A DNA stretch of 64,000 bases from Trichosphaerium sp. ATCC 40318 (GCA_038496445.1 JALMLS010000092.1:1-64000); one strand, 5' to 3'. Positions 8,901-55,501 are shown, numbered from the stretch's first letter. Numbers and translations are program-made. The notes: a model not told the origin generated them from the sequence alone.

Positions 8901-9593
8901 AGAATAGAGGAGGCTAGTGCACGGCCGTTATTCTTGTACGTTGTTATTGCATTGATCGGTACTGGTTTTGATAGTTTTCTGAAACTTGTTTTGTTTTTCA
9001 GGTATTACATTGTACGCTTCCTCCACATATGTGCACAACATCAAGAAACTGCACAGTGCTTTGCTGACTTGAACGGTATTTCTTACCTGGTACCAGTAAT
9101 CAAACGATATTATAGACAAGAAATTGTCAATACAGTATGTGTGCCATGTCTTGGCACAATCAAAGAAATACTCACCAGTGATTCCTGCTTATATCCGCCC
9201 AAAACACACATTACTGTTGTGTTGGAGCCTTTAAAGGGTTTACATGATTGGATACAAGAGGATATAAACAGTAGATGTCCTAATCAGGTACCGTTGGTGT
9301 CTTCCAATATACTTTTGTCTGACTGCGTGTACAATAGGAAATATGGGACTTATTGGACAGTGTAGTCACCCTGTGCTATGACAATACTAAAGCCACTACA
9401 GAGGTATGTAAAAACGGTATGGTTCGTTAGTGCTAATTTTAATTAAAAGACTGCAGACTTGCTTGCCAAACTGCAAACAACGTCACCTGTTGTTGCGCCC
9501 AAAACAAATAAACAGAACAAGCAAACATTTACAGACATCAACAACATTGTAAATGATTTGTTGAATGATGCAGAGGGAGTAACAGACATATAA
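5949..9593 (+). CDS. Afi1/MesA-type DENN-like domain protein with C-terminal ARM/HEAT repeats
   Basis: Spliced AEFDINEGNTISSSYP...IADLCLPDRGH, LYGIALFRNKSDATVKRGAIQKSL, RILFVGAPAA, RPYVALT (Afi1/SPA pattern). ARM-like repeats follow (VVPQVSKLLDDHMPNVRQAAAQTL). Confidence 0.8.
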
Positions 9594-9766
9594 CATTGTA
9601 AATCATATAAATACGTTGTATATTGTAGTTTATTGGTACCCCAATATTCAAAATGTTACATATATCAATTGGGCGAGTGGTGTAATTGGTATCACACGCC
9701 CTTAGCATGGGCGAGGTACCGGGATCGAAGCCCGGCTTGTCCAACCATCTTTTTACATTTTTTTTA
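9498..9766 (+). repeat. Left arm of a ~270-bp inverted duplication (last ~31 codons of the DENN-ARM gene, 3' flank, tRNA-Ala, T-tract)
   Basis: Reverse complement of 14881-15150, with only about 2 substitutions plus T-run length differences. Confidence 0.97.
9671..9743 (+). tRNA. tRNA-Ala(AGC)
   Basis: Cloverleaf with GGGCGAG/CTTGTCC acceptor stem including G3:U70, anticodon arm CGCCC-TTAGCAT-GGGCG and ATCGAAG T-loop. A T-run terminator follows. Confidence 0.97.
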
Positions 9767-10418
9767 CTTTAGTGGTGTTTTGCAATCCTTTTTAATACTG
9801 TACATTTTTGCTTTAATACAGTTTATCAGACTTTTATGGTATTTTGAGTGGCAAAAACAAAGCTTTGTTCAAATCCTTAGTTAGTTTCAATTCAGTGTCA
9901 GATAAAATATTGTCCATTTCAGTCAAGTTGGTCAAAATTTAACTGGTTGTGCATGAAAGTTAATTATCTGGCAAAAATTTCTATGCTAACCAGTGCTTGT
10001 AATTAATTGACAAAAATATTCAAATTTCAAGATGATGCAGAAGCCAAGAGAACACTTTCAAGAAAAAAAACCCTCCACATATACAAAATAAGAAATTTAT
10101 TTTAACTCTTTTAAACAGTGGTGGAATCAAACAAAATACCTGTGCCTAAATGGTGCCATTTGCATGGAAAATAAATGTGCCCAAAATGTGTAATTTGTGT
10201 CCAATTCCACCACTGAAAGACAAAATCTGCACCTTCAACAATGCCAACTGCTCATGTAATGCTTGTGCTTGGTATTCACGTTGTTTTATTAATTCAGCGT
10301 GAACATGGTGTTTTTGCCAGCGAAAGAACCCACAAGTGTGCCACATGAACAATTGTAGTACCACTTTCCTGGGTTTTTTCCACTGTTACTAAGCTTTGCA
10401 ACAGTACTGGAATCGGGA

Positions 10419-10610
10419 TTTTGACCCGTACTAAACCCGTACAGAACCCGTACTTTTGACCCGTACTTAACCCGTACGGGTTCCGTACTTTTGACCCGTA
10501 CTAAACCCGTACGGAACCCGTACTTTTGACCCGTACTTAACCCGTACGGGTTCTGTATTGTTGACCTGTACTCTACCCGTACGGGTTACGTACGGGATCC
10601 GTACGGGTAG
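10419..10610 (+). repeat. Tandem 35-bp array (TTTTGACCCGTAC-TAAACCCGTAC-GGAACCCGTAC), left subterminal
   Basis: ACCCGTAC periodicity is directly visible, with internal CCGTACGG palindromes. Confidence 0.95.
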
Positions 10611-11273
10611 AGTACAATTAAATAATATGAAAAATTGGATACAGAATATACTCCTCTTTTTCCATACAATGTATGTGTACACATATATCACATGTGTGCC
10701 AAAACCACAACCATCAGTATACACTTGCAATCAAAAAAAAAATTTGGCCATCAAATTTTGTTTGGATTTGGCGATCAAAAAATCCAAAAAAAAATTACTG
10801 CAATTAAATGGCAGCTTGTAATCGTAAGGTACAAAAACATGTATTATTAATAGATGAGGGTGTTTTAAGGTTATTAGGGCATTTACTTAAAAAGTAGAGG
10901 AGAAAACTTAATAAAGTGCAAAATGTAGCTTTTTGCTGAATTTTGTTGTTTTATTGAATAACTTTGGTCTGACTGTACAAACTGCTCAGAAAATGTAGCA
11001 TTAGGTATATTTAGGTACAATGCATGGTTTCATGATGGTTTGGGGATCAACTCACCATTTTTAGGCAAAAACGACAGAAAATATGTATTTGGAGTAGTTT
11101 AAGGATATTATGGCCTAATAGCTCTATTAAACCACTTTTTAAAGGCGATTATGGGTTTCAAGCATTTTTCTGAAGTAGTCGTTAAGTTGTGGATATTAAG
11201 TTGGGTTTTAGGACAATTAAGGCATGATGTCTAAAATATCTCCTCAAACAGGTCAAAAACATGGTCGTTTAGT

Positions 11274-11338
11274 GGTAATGGGGTTGTAATGTAATGTAAT
11301 GTATTGTAATGTGTTGTAATGTAAATGTACTTGTAATA
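11274..11338 (+). repeat. (GTAAT)n degenerate microsatellite inside the element
   Basis: gtaatgtaatgtaatgtattgtaatg. Also present in the other two copies. Confidence 0.85.
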
Positions 11339-11408
11339 GTTAAGAAAACAATAAACCAATCCATCGTTTTTACTATTTTGTGTACACAATTATAACTGCT
11401 GACACATA

Positions 11409-11655
11409 TTTTGACCCGTACCTAACCCGTACGGGTTCCGTACTTTTGACCCGTACAAAACCCGTACGGAACCTGTACTTTTGACCCGTACTCAACCCGT
11501 ACGGAACCCGTACTTTTGACCCGTACTCAACCCGTACGGGTTCCGTACTTTTGACCCGGATTAAACCCGTACGTAACCCGTACTTTCGACCCGTACAAAA
11601 CCCGTACGGAATCCGTACTTTTTGACCCGTACTCTACCCATACATTATCCGTACT
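11409..11655 (+). repeat. Tandem 35-bp array, right subterminal (about 6-7 units)
   Basis: Same unit and same orientation as the left array. Confidence 0.95.
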
Positions 11656-12041
11656 CCCGATTTTACTACTGAACAAGTGTTAGCCCATAATAACATGTTC
11701 ACTTTTTGGTGCTTTAATGAATATAGCCACTAATAAAGGTAAGTTTAAAGTAGCATATTCAATGCACCTAATTCGTTTGTAGGGTACAGCAATGGCGTAG
11801 TATTGACCAAAAATAGTGTGTTAGCATCTGCAGGATATAGTGATGGCTTTGTGGTGTGCACATTAACTGGTGATGAGATTTGTGGCATTTTGGTGAGTTT
11901 GGGTTTTTATACAACCTTTTTAGCATGTATCAATAATTTACTGATGTATTTTGCAGGTTGTGGTAAAAGTGGTGTTGATTTTCTTTTGTGTGTCTTAAAG
12001 TCACTTGCCTTTGCTGGACAATAGTTTGATAGCATAAAAGA

Positions 12042-13094
12042 CAGTAGTAAAATCGAAAGTACGTGTGAAGTACGTATATTGTACGTGTGAAAAGTACGTG
12101 CCACGTACGTATATTGTACGTGTCAAAAGTTGGAATTTTGCCTCGTTTTGAACAAAAAATACTAAAAACGATGGATTGGTTTATTGGTAATTACAACTAC
12201 ATATACATTACAATACATTACAATACACTACATACAATACATTACAATACATTACAATACATTACCACTAAACGACCATGTTTCTGGAGATATTTCTATC
12301 ATCATGCCTTACCGACCTACAACTGCAACTTAACCACCACAACTTAATGACTATTTCAGAAAAATGCTTGAAACCCATAATCGCCTTTAAAAAGTGGTTT
12401 AATAGAGCTATTAAGCCATAATATCCTTAAACTACTCCAAATACATATTTTCTGTCGTTTTTGCCTAAAAATGGTGAATTGATCTCCAAACCACCATGGA
12501 ACCATGCATCGTACCTAAATATACCTAATGCTACATTTTCTGAGCAGTTCATACAGTCAGACCAAAGTTATTCAATAAAACAACAAAATTCAGCAAAAAG
12601 CTACATTTTGCACTTTATTAAGTTTTCTCCTCTACTTTTAAGTAATGCCCTAATAACCTTAAACACCCTCATCTATTAATAATACATGTTTTTGTACCTT
12701 ACGATTACAAGCTGCCATTTAATTGCAGTAATTTTTTTGGATTTTTTGATCGCCAAATCCAAACAAAATTTGATGGCCAAATTTTTTTTTGATTGCAAGT
12801 GTATACTGATGGTTGTGGTTTTGGCACACATGTGATATATGTGTACACATACATTGTATGGAAAAAAAGAGGAGTATGTTCTGTATCCAATTACAATTTT
12901 TCATATTATTTAATTGTACTCTACCTGTACGGATCCCGTACATAACCCGTACAGGTAGAGTACGGGTCAACAATACGAAACCTGTACGGGTTAAGTACAG
13001 GTCAAAAGTACAGGTCACATACGGGTTTTGTACAGGTCAAAAGTACAGGTTCCGTACAGGTTTAGTACGGGTCAAAATCCCGATTCCAATACTG
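12042..13094 (-). mobile_element. TIR element copy 2, inverted (tail-to-tail with copy 1)
   Basis: Ends CAGTAGTAAAATCG (12042) and CCCGATTCCAATACTG (13094). 12160-13094 aligns to the reverse complement of 10402-11373. Its right end carries GTACGTGT/GTACGTAT repeats instead of CCCGTAC repeats. Confidence 0.85.
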
Positions 13095-13379
13095 TTATAT
13101 CAACAAACAGTTAAAATTACTAACCCCACCTATATGTAGGTCAAGTAGGCAAAGACACAACTATTATTCAGATGATGAAAGCTCAGAAGAATGGGATGAA
13201 GATCTTTATTTTGAACTATGAAAATATAATATGTAATAAACAGCACAGTGGTTATTGTCGTCCACAGCACAATAAACCCACCTTTTTATAAAAAAAAAAA
13301 AGTGTGATTGCATGGAAAATAAACATGCCCAAAATGTGTGATTTGCATGTTGTCCAATTCCACCACTGCTATTGATAAG

Positions 13380-13760
13380 GTTTAAACAATAATTGATATT
13401 TTTGGTGGAAGAAAAAGTAAGCAATGCATCATCTGCAAACAAAATTTGTTTTAAAAGTAGAAATGTAGCTTTGGCTCTGATAACATCTTGTCATTGGTTT
13501 ATCCTACAATTAAAAGGTTTCAACATGATGGCAAAAAGAGTTGGGGAAAGAGGGTTGCCTCACTCAACTTTGAACATTTTGTTGGAAACAACTCCATTGA
13601 TACAAATAGCTACTTGTATTTGAAGCTGTTTCACAAGGGCAACAGCAACAGTCGTGGGTACTCCAATGTGGATGAGAAGCTTAACTAAAATATTGTGAGC
13701 ACAAAGGCTTTTGTTGCCAAGAGACTAAGAGACAATGGTGTGCTTTTACAATTTCCAAAG
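13380..13760 (-). pseudogene. Degraded non-LTR (L1/Tx1-like) reverse transcriptase fragment
   Basis: Minus strand reads SLLATKAF/frameshift/HNILVKLLIHIGVP...VAICINGVVSNKMFKVE*GNPLSPTLFAIMLKP...INQ*QDV...KQILFADDALL. These are the KAF(D), (RQ)GxPLSP and FADD motifs. Confidence 0.88.
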
Positions 13761-13782
13761 TGGCTATCTGATTGTCAACATA

Positions 13783-14377
13783 GGTATTTAGAGTAGATTA
13801 AGGATATTATGGCCTAATAGCTCTATTAAACCACTTTTTAAAGGTGATTATGGGTTTCAAGCATTTTTCTGAAATAGTCATTAAGTTGTGGATATTAAGT
13901 TGAAGTTTAGGACAATTAAGGCATGATGTCTAAAATATCCTCAAACAGGTCAAAAACATGGCCATTTAGTGGTAATGGGGTTGTAATGTAATGTAATGTA
14001 TTGTAATGTGTTGTAATGTACATGTACTTGTAATAGTTAAGAAAATAAACCAATCCATCATTTTTACTATGTTGTGTACACAATTATAACTGCTGACACA
14101 TATTTGACCTGTAGATTCTGTACTTTTGAGTACAAAAACCCATACAATCCATACTTTTAACCCATACTTTTGACCTGTATTCAACTTGTACAGGTTCCAT
14201 ACTTTTGACACAGATTAAATCCATACATGTGTACTTAACCTGTATGGATTCTGTACTTTTGACCTGTATTCAACGTACAGGTTCTGTACTTTTGACCAAT
14301 ACAAAACCTGTGTGGAATCTGTACTTTTTGACCTGTACTCTACCTGTACATTATCCATACTCCTGACTTTACTACTG
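13783..14377 (+). mobile_element. TIR element copy 3, 5'-truncated and heavily CpG-decayed
   Basis: Direct homologue of 11083-11671, ending ...TTTACTACTG. CCCGTAC units appear as CCTGTAC or CCCATAC. Confidence 0.88.
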
Positions 14378-14880
14378 ATGTGGCACATATATACTAATGC
14401 ATGCACATGTACTCACTTGTAAGGTTGCCAAAGGATCTTGAGAAGAATTGGTTGCAAACACAGCAGTTACAGTTCATACAAAAGGAAACAAGTTTATATT
14501 AGTTGATATGCAAACATGGAGAGTTGTTAATTGATATGCAACAGGTGGCATTGGTGGTTGAACAACCACTAATGTATTGGAATTAGAAACTTAAATCAAC
14601 AACCATTGGGAAATTACTGTACCACACTGTAATGTAGGAAATATAAAAAGACACAACTTGTGATTTGGTGATGTTCAGACAAATGGGAATGTAGATCTTT
14701 ATTTTGAACTATGAAAATACCTGGAATAAATAACCATTTTGGTTTATGCATATCGCACATTGAAAACATGCATAAAACATCACTTTGATATAAGAAAAGT
14801 AAATAACAATTTTTTACAATACATAAATGTGAACAATGATTACAACATTGTTGGTAGACTTAATCAAAACCATTAAAATA

Positions 14881-15150
14881 TAAAAAAAAAATGTAAAAGA
14901 TGGTTGGACAAGCCGGGCTTCGATCCCGGTACCTCGCCCATGCTAAGGGCGTGTGATACCAATTACACCACTCGCCCAATTGATATATGTAACATTTTGA
15001 ATATTGGGGTACCAATAAACTACAATATACAACGTATTTATATGATTTACAATGTTATATGTCTGTTACTCCCTCTGCGTCATTCAACAAATCATTTACA
15101 ATGTTGTTGATGTCTGTAAATGTTTGCTTGTTCTGTTTGTTTGTTTTGGG
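14881..15150 (-). repeat. Right arm of the inverted duplication
   Basis: Reverse complement of 9498-9766. Confidence 0.97.
14905..14977 (-). tRNA. tRNA-Ala(AGC), identical second copy
   Basis: Exact reverse complement of 9671-9743. Confidence 0.97.
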
Positions 15151-47671: not shown

Positions 47672-50289
47672 CTCAGTTGGCACCATAATTAGTGATGGCA
47701 TTGTTTTCAACACAACTGTTTTTGACATCTGATTTATATTTATTTATTTATGCACTGCTGTACCTTTGCATTAGCATTGCGCTGTGATCGATAGTTCCTG
47801 AATGGTAACACTGCAACTCTTAATCGTTTGATTGAAAATACAAGTACTATAGCTACGATAGCAAGTACTACAACAGCAGCAACAATGCCAATGATGATAA
47901 ACAGCATACTCTTTGAGTCACACTTTGATTTGTTAACATTAAAAGTAGCTGCAAATGTCCCTGAAAAAAATCGTCAGAACAATACAAGTGGTATGTGTGA
48001 TTGTGTAGCACATACCCATATTTCGAGTTTGATTTGCAGTGACTTCTTCACATTCATTATTTTCTGTTTGAGCTGTAATACTTGAAAATGAGCCACTCAC
48101 ACAATCATTTGTGACATTGTATGTGAACAATGTACGACTATTTCCTGTGTTGACAGCATTATCGACCTTGATAATGGCATTTCCATCCAAGAGCACACAG
48201 CCTAAAATATGATATTAGAAGATATCTTGATGGTTTAGCATCAACGTACTTGTTGCGTGAACAACGGCATTGTCAAATACGATTGTGCTTGTAGGCAGCA
48301 TAGTTAGATTATAAAATTGTACTTGACCTTCAAACACCACTGTCTCTCCAACATCTATAACAAGAGTCTCTCCTGTCGGTTGCGTCCATACACCTGTAGC
48401 TGTATTGCATGTAAATCTAGGTGTAGGTGCATTACCAATACAAGTTTGTGTGCTTGTAGATGTTGGTTGCAATGGAAGTGTAGGTGCGAAAGTTGCAGTT
48501 TTGTTTGGACTTATTGGAAATGATGTAGGGCTTGTTGGAGATAATGGAGGTATGGACGTTGGCGCTGTAGTAGGTACATACGTTGGAGCTATGGTGGGTA
48601 TGATATCGGTTCCATTTCTCTATATAAGTTAGTACATAGGAGAGGAAGAAAAAGGTAAAGTACAAATTGATATGCTCCAACATCAATGGCACTAGCGTTT
48701 CTTATTCTACCACCTAATCATTTGTTATGAGTAATCAAAACTTGTCACTGATTGCATACGTAAATCATACCGAGGGACATCAGTATCAGCCCCTATAAAA
48801 CAAATCAGTACATAGTATTAAAACGATATTTACCTTGAAACAAAAAGACAGGTTGAGATGTATTTGTCAAGTCATAGTTGCCAAAAGTCATGTTGGCAAA
48901 AACATCGACATTATTTAGAAACAAGAATGAAGGTTGAATAGTAGACTTATTAATACTCTCATACTCAGAAGCATTCTTGACCAGTAGAATATTCTTCCAT
49001 GTGTCTATTGTTGATGTAGTGACCAAATCAACAATACCTAATCCAACAGTGACTGACTCTAATGTGGATTCACAGCCCTCTACTACTGTTACAAAGGTTA
49101 GCGCTTCTTTGATTAACAAAAAAGGAGTTGACGGGTGGTACTTGTTAGTGCGTTAGTCACTACACTGTTGTATACTTCCAGTCCATCATTGGAGTAACAT
49201 CTGAATTGCCGTCAGGTTCCCAAATAAGTAGCAAAGATTACCTGAAGACAGTTTCTTTAGTGGCGTTGGTAGCTTTGAAAAGAGACCTATCTTTAATCGA
49301 CTTGTTAGTAATCAAAGTATTTAAAAGCAAAAAACCAGTGTACCTATTGTTACATTCGCTTGTAGTAGACCAAAGACAACTAAAGAAAGCACTTTGTAAA
49401 TATTACCAATAGAAAAATGGTTCTAAGCTTACTTCGACCTTCACCATTTATGCTTAAAGATGTAGCAAAAACTGAGCTTTGTTGCACAAAGAATACTGAG
49501 TCCTAAGAGAAGAGTGAGGTGTACTACAAGTAACAACTGTACATACTGCATAAGACAATGCACCACCTTCATTGATTGATACTGTAGACGCAAAAACATA
49601 AATGCTTGTTCGATTGTGTGGAGGACTTACATCTGTCACTTTCATTTGGTTGAGGGATACTGTAGCTATTGTTTTCAACAATGTTAGTTGATTCAAATTG
49701 CGATTCAAAGGAAAGACGCACATGCAGTAATTCTGAAAGGTATCTCGCTTGAGCCGTTTGCTGCAAGCCGAAATGAGTCAAACACAATACCCGTGCACTC
49801 AGTTATTTCAATGGACTCATACATCCCTCCATTGACAGTAATATTGTCACAATTTAAAATTATGAGATCCAACGCGCTACCCTACAACTTGGTTTAGAAA
49901 AACAACAAAAAAGTGTTCTAACAAATAAGCACGTGACTCTTTTTCGCACTTTTTTCTAGTGCTGGGCTACGTACTTTTACGTTTAATATTATATCATCTA
50001 CTGTGTTTAAAGTGATGTTAATGCTGCTTGTGACATTTATACAGTCAACAGTAGCATTTTCCTAAAGTCGTAAAGTTACTATTTTTAATACTAAAAGAAT
50101 AGTAGCCTTTTTGGGCTTGGTTTTTGCTTTCGTTTGGCATACCAGTGCAACTGTTATGTTGCTAAACTCCACTGAAGGTACTTTTACACAAACTCCGACA
50201 GAATAGTTCACAAATATCGTCAAAGTAATCAATACGCATGGAAATACAGCGCTTAAGAGCGTCCAAGGTAGTTTAGGTTGTTTTGCCAT
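47672..50289 (-). CDS. Type-I membrane glycoprotein, paralogue 1 (3' end approximate)
   Basis: Hydrophobic leader, NxS/T-rich ectodomain, Pro/Thr stalk, TM segment MLFIIGIVAAVVVLAIVAIVLVF, then KRLR. Confidence 0.8.
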
Positions 50290-52904: not shown

Positions 52905-52952
52905 CTAAGGGTTTTGACATGCAGTTCAATGAAGGTGTTTTCTGATTTATAT

Positions 52953-55501
52953 TTATTGTTTTAGGCACTGCTGTACCCTTGCATTAGCATTGCGCTGTGA
53001 TCGATAGTTCCTGAAAGGTAACACTGCAACTCTTAATCGTTTGATTGAAAATACAAGTACTATAGCTACAATAGCAAGTACTACAACAGCAGCAACAATG
53101 CCAATGATGATAAACAGCATACTCTTTGAGTCACACTTTGATTTGTTAACATTAAAAGTAGCTGCAAATGTCCCTGAAAGAAAGAGTCAGAACAATAAAC
53201 ATTGATGAGTTTTAGCATACCCATGTTTTGAGTTTGATTTGCAGTTACTTCTTCACATTCATCATTTTCTGTTTGAGCTGTAATACTTGAAAACGAACCG
53301 CTCACACAATCATTTGTGACATTGTATGTGAACAATGTACGACTATTTCCTGTATTGACAGCATTATCAATCTTGATAATTGCATTCCCGTCCAAGAGTA
53401 CACAGTCTGAAATATGATATTAGAAGATATCTTGATGGTTGCATCAACGTACTTGTTGCGTGAACAATGGCATTGTCAAATACGATAGTGCTTGTAGGCA
53501 GCATGGTTAGATTATAAAATTGTACTTGACCTTCAAACACCACTGTCTCTCCAACATCTATAACAAGAGTCTCTCCTGTCGGTTGTGTCCATACACCTGT
53601 AGCTGTATTGCATGTAAATATAGGTGTAGGTGCACTACCAATACAAGCTTGTGCGCTTGTAGATGTTGGTTGCAATGGAAGTGTAGGTGCGAAAGTTGCA
53701 GTTTTGTTTGGACTTATTGGAAATGATGTAGGGCTTGTTGGAGATAATGGAGGTATGGATGTTGGGGTTGTGGTAGGTACATACGTTGGAGCTATGGTGG
53801 GAATGAAACCGGTTCCAGTTCTCTATATAAGTTAGTACATAGGAGGGGAAGAAAAATCTAAAGTACAAATTGATATGCTCCAACATCAATAACACTGCTG
53901 TTTCTTATTCTACCACCTAACCATTTCTTATGAGTAATCAAAACTTGTCACTGATTGCATACGTAAATCATACCGAGGGACATCAGTATCGGCTCCTATG
54001 AATAAATGAGCATATGTCTCGGTGTATCAATATTTACCTTGAAACAAAAAGACAGGTTGAGATGTATTTGTCAAGTCATAGTTGCCAAAAGTCATGTTGG
54101 CAAAAACATCGACATTATTTAGAAACAAGAATGAAGGTTGAATAGTAGACTTATTAATACTCTCATACTCAGAAGCATTCTTGACCAGTAGAATATTCTT
54201 CCATGTGTCTATTGTTGATGTAGTGACCAAATCACGAATACCTAATCCAACAGTGACTGACTCTAATGTGGATTCACAGCCCTCTACTACTATTGAAAGT
54301 GTTAGATTTTTGTATTTCAAAAAAAACTGTGTCAACAATGTACTTGTGAGAGTGTCAGTGAGTACACTGTTGTATACTTCCACACTTTCATTTGACGAAC
54401 ACCTAACTATATCAGTGACCCAATGGCAATAAAAATTACCTGAATATAGAGAACGTGGTGGTATTGGAGCCTCTACAAATAGCCTTATCTTGACTCAATA
54501 TGTAAGTAATCAATAATACTCAGAAAAAAAAACAAAGTGAGCGTACCCAGTGTTACGTTTGATTCTTCTAAAGTAAAGAGAGCTAAAAAGTACATAAATA
54601 TTCTATCAAAAACAATAAAAGTTTACATTTGCCATCACTTATGATATTATACGAAGTAAAATGAATGGAACTGGTTTTCACATAGAATGTCACCTCCTCA
54701 AAAGTAAAGTAAATTTTTACAGAACAATATACTAAAACAACGTACTGCATCAGACTGCGTCTCTCCCTCGGTGATTGAGACTGAAGAATCAGCAATATGC
54801 ATAGTTGTTCGATTATCTGGTATAGCGTTCACATCTATTAATTTCAGTCTCGAAAGTGATGCTGTCGCTATTTTTCTAATAGTTAGTTGATGTAATACTT
54901 AACCCTTTGAAATAACGCACATTTAAACACTCTGAAAGGCACGTGACTTGACCAGTTTGACGAAATCGTAAATGCACTAAACACAACATCCTGGCACCCG
55001 TTTAATTCAACATACTCGTACTTCCCTCCATTGACGGTAATGTTTTGACTGTTTCGAATATCTAGATTGGACAGAGTGGTCTAGAATGAGTTAAGAAAAA
55101 AGAAGACCAATAGGACATTTTTTTTCTCATTTTCTTTTTTGTGCATTGTTGTACTATCTGAAAAAAACCGTTTGGACTACTTCATACTTTTACGTTTAGG
55201 ACTATATCATTCACTGTGTTTAAAGTGATGTTAATGGTGCTTGTGACATTTATACAGTAAACAGTAGCATTTTCCTAAAGTCGTAAAGTTACTATTTTTA
55301 ATACTAAAAGAGAATAGCCTTTTTGGGCTTGGTTTTTGCTTTCGTTTGGCATACCAGTGCAACTGTTATGTTGCTAAACTCCACTGAAGGTACTTTTACA
55401 CAAACTCCGACAGAATAGTTCACAAATAGCGTCAAAGTAATCAATGCGCATGGAAATACAGCGCTTAATAGCGTCCAAGCTAGTTTAGGTTGTTTTGCCA
55501 T
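52953..55501 (-). CDS. Type-I membrane glycoprotein, paralogue 2 (3' end approximate)
   Basis: Direct duplicate of paralogue 1 (homology about 52941-55580 versus 47728-50378) with the same intron positions. Confidence 0.8.

Follow-up and report, generated by a model that had tools for sequence, protein, structure and literature searches.

A gene-free island between two convergent tRNA-Ala(AGC) genes of Trichosphaerium sp. is probably an intergenic transposon nest

A stretch of 64,000 nucleotides from Trichosphaerium sp. ATCC 40318 (GCA_038496445.1 JALMLS010000092.1:1-64000), referred to hereafter as the window, was analysed. At positions 9498-15150 it contains an island framed by inverted arms, each of which carries an inward-pointing tRNA-Ala(AGC) gene. 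An original prediction had described this island as a silent, CpG-depleted domain with two nested levels of symmetry, and as a candidate centromere. We find that its interior is a nest of dispersed, partly decayed transposons, with no designed palindrome. The island as a whole is most probably an intergenic transposon nest lying between two convergent copies of a single tRNA-Ala(AGC) gene. Contigs of the 70-Mb assembly are denoted below by C and a number.

Results

Dispersed transposons make up the interior of the island

The 5.1-kb interior is gene-free, as the original prediction had stated. Its longest open reading frame (ORF) does not exceed 108 amino acids, and no Pfam family was matched by ten interior ORFs, the longest among them. 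Two segments, 9766-9901 and 14378-14588, had no match elsewhere, while most of the remainder is dispersed repeat (Table 1).

Two elements, of 1270 and 1053 bp, do lie tail to tail around 11672-12041, as had been described. The second level of symmetry read into this arrangement did not survive comparison with the rest of the assembly. The two elements are separate copies of one dispersed family (the E family; copies E1 and E2), and the supposed core between them belongs to an older repeat, X, that has been split. This was apparent from two paralogous loci, on C374 and C537, in which window segments 9902-10115, 10216-10399 and 11675-12037 form one unbroken sequence. Neither paralogue contains E1 or the 100-bp miniature inverted-repeat transposable element (MITE) found in repeat X of the window, and their junctions read a single AAA and a single two-base site. 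These uninterrupted empty sites prove that the MITE and E1 are insertions into repeat X. The core follows the middle part of the repeat directly in both paralogues, which identifies 11672-12041 as the remainder of repeat X. It aligns with C374:23169-23564 and C537:5861-6256 at 82-83% identity overall and at 87-91% within the BLAST-aligned blocks.

The retroelement tail at 13095-13301 behaves likewise as a dispersed repeat. Its copies have varied 5' starts and a common 3' end, and the window copy is 98% identical to C17:114907-115123.

The two haplotypes share the arms and differ in the interior

A contig of 22.9 kb, C454, aligns with window positions 20128-14589 and 9765-2424 at 98.2% identity over its whole length outside the island. 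C454 is the other haplotype of the window locus. Both arms are kept in C454. Its interior measures 10.4 kb, compared with 5.1 kb in the window (the island occupies C454:4978-15898), and is composed of the same families in another order and number, together with reverse-transcriptase fragments. High-identity homology between the haplotypes inside the arms is limited to about 55 bp. The same left flank and arm are also found at the end of C134 and at the start of C108.

No second haplotype contig was found at window 45.5-49.5 kb, away from the island. This fits an assembler that splits haplotypes only where they are structurally divergent.

Three further observations were made. C108 matches C454 at 99.9% identity over 9.6 kb, until at C108:9958 it passes, within a transposon copy, into unrelated sequence; this points to a probable misjoin in the assembly or to a third structural variant. 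Two repeat contigs, C515 and C630, are palindromic. A retroelement tail lies about 130 bp downstream of the right tRNA gene in both haplotypes (window 14589-14826, and C454). The two tails are only about 73-84% alike in flanks that are 98% identical, which two separate insertions into the same site would explain, as would conversion by a younger copy.

E1 belongs to a recently active family of cut-and-paste elements

At least 12 other contigs contain full-length copies of E1 (query positions 1-1270), with identities of 90-99%. Ten full copies have identical ends, CAGTACTGGAATCGGGATTTTGAC... and ...CCGTACTCCCGATTTTACTACTG, and the termini CAGTACTGG... and ...TACTACTG are common to all copies of the family, the ends having the form CAGTA...TACTG. 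A 2-bp target duplication of variable sequence was present in nine of the ten full copies, compared with an expectation by chance of 1/16 per copy. A pattern search of the genome located approximately 70 copies of the 5' end and 51 of the 3' end, spread over more than 40 contigs, while reversed control patterns for the ends gave zero matches. The arrays of a 35-bp unit noted in the original prediction are real. Tandem Repeats Finder (TRF) placed subterminal arrays of ACCCGTAC within E1 at 10419-10593 (5.0 copies) and 11409-11633 (6.4 copies).

E1 and E2 are 87% identical overall. The 3' part of E2 (12042-12714) is of a variant type with GTACGTG repeats and is 94% identical to variant copies on C454 and C108; E2 is flanked by GA and TT, without a target duplication. 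The variant 3' part and the missing duplication together indicate that E2 is probably a recombinant of two copies. Members of this sister subfamily, in which the subterminal motif GTACGGG is changed to GTACGTG and the 5' end is CAGTAGTGAAATCGGG, are 77-78% identical to E1. They were seen at window 12042-12714, C454:13353-14311 and C108:9015-9935, and on C5, C110, C595, C234 and C621. The motif change suggests that the transposase binding sites are co-diverging.

Recent activity of the family is evident from one E copy that shares 99% identity with a copy elsewhere in the genome, and from the differing contents of the haplotypes. Eight of nine other full-length copies were flanked by low-CpG repeats of the same set, and nested islands are thus the normal home of the family. 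No tRNA gene was found within 1.5 kb of nine other full-length copies, and none in the stretches fetched from seven other repeat-bearing contigs (C5, C7, C245, C630, C81, C49 and C86). Targeting of E insertion to tRNA genes was therefore rejected.

A candidate transposase gene lies within related ends

The E family resembles the CACTA/Mirage/Chapaev (CMC) elements in that its termini begin with CA(G/C)T and short subterminal arrays are present at both ends. It resembles them also in the target duplications of the E elements and the MITE, which are of 2-3 bp and variable in sequence, and in the deletion derivatives, which range from 100 bp to 1.3 kb. In a profile search the Transposase_21 family (PF02992) was unmatched anywhere in this genome; the control genomes in that search were silent too.

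A multi-exon gene was found within rearranged E-type ends on C630 and C49, and it adjoins a related CAGTGGTGG terminus on C86. In the product of this candidate transposase gene the N-terminus is zinc-finger-like, and motifs such as AWDDFTFD...NL occur. No Pfam family was matched by the gene on C86, C49 or C630, and a 124-amino-acid exon had no match among 1.84 billion proteins (HMMER). Among 20 ORFs from candidate autonomous copies, Pfam returned only two reverse-transcriptase matches, from other elements. Language-model leads from a protein atlas, to Transposase_21, Plavaka and the RAG1 RNase H, were weak and sub-threshold. On C86 the transposase-like gene occupies 248251-251167, and the genome holds about 28 paralogous matches to it. 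Its neighbours on both C86 and C49 are a second gene in divergent orientation and a region of proline-rich tandem repeats.

CpG content follows the age of the transposons

The ratio of observed to expected CpG (o/e) is 0.59 for the whole interior, as compared with about 0.8 in the flanking genes. The original prediction had placed the start of CpG loss just inside each tRNA gene. This is borne out for the old pieces, with o/e between 0 and 0.4, but not for E1 (1.19) or E2 (0.89). No CpG occurs in the 346 bp of 9766-10111 (o/e 0.00) and a single one in 14378-14882 (0.08); the ratio is 0.19 in the core, 0.10 in 13095-13776 and 0.06 in E3, an old fragment of the family. The high ratio of E1 indicates that it is young. 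With old pieces at 0-0.4 and young ones at 0.9-1.2, CpG depletion is not uniform across the island, whose transposons form an age series.

The nature of the loss was evident when E3 was compared with E1. Changes had occurred at 32 of the 60 CpG positions (53%), 29 of them transitions (C>T or G>A), as against 41 of 513 other positions (8%). Genes of the DNA methyltransferase (DNMT) type are present in the genome. The old pieces thus carry the signature of methylated-CpG deamination (CpG to TpG or CpA) that is typical of silenced transposons. The same features mark the CpG decay of methylated repeats in vertebrates, plants and many fungi: C>T and G>A changes are overrepresented at the CpG positions of old copies, CpGs persist in young copies and in genes under selection, and DNMT-type genes are present. 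The case differs from those in that methylation in this organism is read from sequence alone. That CpGs are retained in the arms is due mainly to the tRNA gene, in which six of an arm's seven or eight CpGs lie.

Another CpG-poor zone of the window, at 46-49 kb, was considered as a second nest and rejected. It is a local duplicate, 88% identical to 52.9-54.6 kb. The direct duplication is of about 1.65 kb (47728-49384 and 52941-54587), has a CpG o/e of 0.4-0.55 and is unrelated to the repeats of the island. Among other searches, an ORF of 351 amino acids from the window had no homologue, the nematode SL1 sequence was absent, and no nuclear receptor domain was detected.

The arms are a local inverted duplication of a tRNA-Ala(AGC) gene

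An inverted-repeat search of the window gave arms of 268 nt, 98% complementary and 5117 nt apart. Each carries an intact tRNA-Ala(AGC) gene, in agreement with the original prediction. The gene, found by ARAGORN, has a cloverleaf, an AGC anticodon and the G3:U70 pair. In a short-range search with the Rfam tRNA model RF00005, the left gene (9671-9743) reached 48.7 bits over the full length of the model, against a threshold of 29 bits, and the right gene (14905-14977) has the same score. A whole-window Rfam run at the gathering threshold passed over both genes because of its speed filters, so that an RNA gene cannot be taken as absent from a blank in this run. A run of five T residues at 9751-9755, 8 nt past the left gene, is the likely terminator for RNA polymerase III (Pol III).

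Six copies of the arm were found in the assembly, all at the window locus and its haplotype contigs. The sequence of the tRNA gene is the same in all six copies and in C111. The arms in C198 have 4-5 differing positions, one of which is a CpG-to-TpG change. Outside the T-run, no difference was seen between the right arms of the two haplotypes, compared with a difference of 1.8% in the flanks. The stretch 14830-14882 prolongs the inverted repeat in the other haplotype (haplotype B), where the repeat measures 353 bp at 99.15% identity. A local duplication in inverted orientation, at least 324-353 bp long and comprising the tRNA gene, 172 bp of upstream sequence and about 85 bp downstream, is present in both haplotypes. 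The arms and interior were also considered as a composite mobile element; this was dropped, as there were no further copies and no target duplication.

Beyond this locus, a similarity search detected the exact tRNA-Ala(AGC) sequence only on C111, where it is intact, and on C539, in fragments. The remaining similar matches were TGC or CGC isoacceptors. Of the three intact tRNA-Ala(AGC) genes that the search found, two are thus at this locus, which would account for their having stayed intact.

The gene on C111 lies in a second inverted duplication, free of transposons and arranged head to head (C111:132169-132837). It consists of one intact gene and, about 600 bp away, a copy truncated after some 58 nt. 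Each copy has about 110 bp of upstream sequence, and about 310 bp separate the duplicated units. This tRNA-Ala(AGC) gene has therefore been duplicated locally, in inverted orientation, on two occasions, and the C111 pair may represent an early stage in the history of the window locus.

Table 1. Features mapped in the island (window coordinates)
Feature	Position	Strand	Remarks
Left inverted arm	9498-9765	+	172 bp upstream sequence, tRNA-Ala(AGC) and terminator
tRNA-Ala(AGC), left, inward-pointing	9670-9747 (ARAGORN); 9671-9743 (Rfam RF00005)	+	
Repeat X, left part; old, low-copy, CpG-free	9902-10115	+	81-84% identity to C374:22770-22986 and C537:5469-5678
100-bp MITE in repeat X	10116-10215	+	Ends CAGTGGTGGAAT...CCACCACTG; target duplication AAA; more than 40 dispersed matches
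Repeat X, middle part	10216-10401	+	94% identity to C374:22984-23165; contiguous there with both neighbours
E1, full-length 1270-bp non-autonomous DNA transposon	10402-11671	+	Ends CAGTACTGGAATCGGG... and ...CCCGATTTTACTACTG; target duplication AA
Repeat X, right part (the "370-bp core" of the original prediction)	11672-12041	+	CpG o/e 0.19
E2, 1053-bp copy of the E family, inverted	12042-13094	-	Termini by pattern search
Retroelement 3' tail	13095-13301	+	Poly(A) at 13290-13301; at least 25 dispersed copies
CAGTGGTGG MITE fragment, right end	13305-13368	+	Direct repeat with 10160-10197 (92%); dispersed matches
Old fragment of another dispersed repeat	13370-13776	+	81% to C110:129766-130210; weaker on C17, C454 and C568
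E3, old 3' fragment of the E family	13777-14377	+	82% identity to E1 positions 677-1270
Old retroelement-tail copy	14589-14750	+	74-76% identity to dispersed copies
Small dispersed repeat	14748-14826	+	80-84% identity to dispersed copies
Right inverted arm	14883-15150	-	tRNA-Ala(AGC) inward-pointing
tRNA-Ala(AGC), right	14901-14978 (ARAGORN); 14905-14977 (Rfam model extent)	-	

Discussion

Proposed origin and growth of the nest

We propose that the history of the island probably began with the inverted duplication of a tRNA cassette, by fold-back or template switch at the tRNA gene. A gap would thereby have opened downstream of the two convergent Pol III genes, and insertions into it would be harmless. 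Transposons then piled up in the gap and nested into one another, a step that the interior itself shows. The successive insertions are the old repeat X, retroelement tails, the 100-bp MITE and three copies of the 1.27-kb cut-and-paste element. Such insertions would survive as they spare the tRNA genes, with their internal or upstream outward-facing promoters, and the neighbouring genes. Transposons already in place would in turn offer harmless targets for more insertions, so that the nest would grow. Judging from the mutation spectrum, the copies have probably been silenced by CpG methylation and have decayed by deamination. Deamination of methylated copies would deplete the old pieces of CpG, but not the young copies or the tRNA genes, which are under selection. 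The difference between the two alleles shows that turnover of the content is fast.

Several considerations weigh against this account. The fold-back and "safe harbour" steps are ones that we infer, and the methylation of the repeats is drawn from mutation spectra. The placement of the E family as CMC-like names a candidate superfamily only. Telomere repeats were absent from the 23 contig ends examined, and in this fragmentary assembly the nests are unplaced on chromosomes. Public reads yielded only short contigs over parts of E1, and nothing unique.

tRNA genes as possible insulators

A different, though compatible, account of the island is that its two Pol III-transcribed tRNA genes act as barriers that keep methylation or heterochromatin off the adjacent genes, and have been retained partly for this reason. 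Barriers formed by tRNA genes are an established phenomenon in fission yeast, budding yeast and mammals. Sequence free of CpG starts right past each tRNA terminator, with an o/e of about 0.8 in the flanks, but this boundary is trivial because it coincides with the start of old transposon DNA. The arms are no more informative about methylation, since they hold only two CpG sites outside the tRNA gene. Both arms are kept in both haplotypes despite wholly different interiors, and the right arms have remained identical outside the T-run in flanks that have diverged by 1.8%. However, only three tRNA-Ala(AGC) genes were found, and that two of them are at this locus accounts for their retention. In addition, nine other nests of the same families have no tRNA gene within 1.5 kb, so that tRNA borders are not needed for a nest to exist. 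Taken together, these points make insulation a possible but rather unlikely role. In its stronger form, the convergent pair would be a selected boundary that confines a methylated, fast-turnover nest and shields genes, and nests would be sites of heterochromatin nucleation or even centromeres. This we regard as improbable to a high degree.

An unlikely centromere

That the island is a small regional inverted-repeat centromere, with the tRNA arms as its borders and the transposon pair around the core as a kinetochore-forming centre, seems extremely unlikely. Fission-yeast centromeres are bordered by tRNA genes and inverted repeats, and the centromeres of Komagataella and Candida tropicalis are inverted repeats. 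The likeness is superficial. Here too inverted repeats bearing tRNA-Ala bracket a silenced, gene-free domain, and the island carries silenced repeats. Those centromeres, however, extend over tens of kilobases compared with 5-10 kb here, and they differ also in that this island has no conserved unique core, a dispersed mobile interior, variation between haplotypes and a single locus. The core, a piece of a dispersed repeat, is missing from the other haplotype. The inner arms are independent mobile copies of different subfamilies, one of which has its own target duplication. The interior is not conserved between homologues, being of 5.1 and 10.4 kb with other order and content, and the arm structure occurs at one locus only in the 70-Mb genome, although the contigs lack telomeres and this count is accordingly not absolute. 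Nests are strongly clustered, and no contig has two separate clusters of E ends, but the number of clusters on the 30 largest contigs, about 12, is too small for this to be significant.

Similar nests are present on more than 40 contigs. The original prediction had itself named many scattered islands as an outcome that would speak against a centromere, and in the assembly the same families nest on dozens of contigs, which it does not allow to be placed on chromosomes. What stands of the silent-domain reading is a gene-free repeat domain with CpG decay just downstream of convergent tRNA genes; the centromere and the nested symmetry do not.

An assembly artefact, in which the arms would be a fold-back chimera of long reads and the island mis-assembled, merits just as little credence: the assembly does contain palindromic repeat contigs (C515 and C630) and at least one probable misjoin (C108 as compared with C454), but the separately assembled C198 and C454 both have inverted arms around different, non-palindromic interiors, the left flank and arm recur independently at the end of C134 and the start of C108, and the C198 arms are not exact copies of each other.

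Relation to known systems and significance

The intergenic transposon nest that we favour has its closest known counterpart in the tRNA-associated clusters of Dictyostelium (TRE5, TRE3, DGLT-A and Skipper-2), which are likewise nested transposon islands in a compact genome. Those clusters are made of tRNA-targeting retrotransposons, whereas the main elements here are cut-and-paste DNA transposons. The families in the present nest have no general link to tRNA genes, and their tRNA neighbourhood looks one-off.

The findings contain no surprising biology. They remove a centromere candidate, which is useful for annotation and for the search for the real centromeres of this genome. They define the E family by exact ends, target duplication and empty sites, as a recently active and structurally polymorphic family in a poorly studied protist. 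They also give clean evidence, at the sequence level, for the mutation and probable methylation of CpGs in the repeats of this organism.

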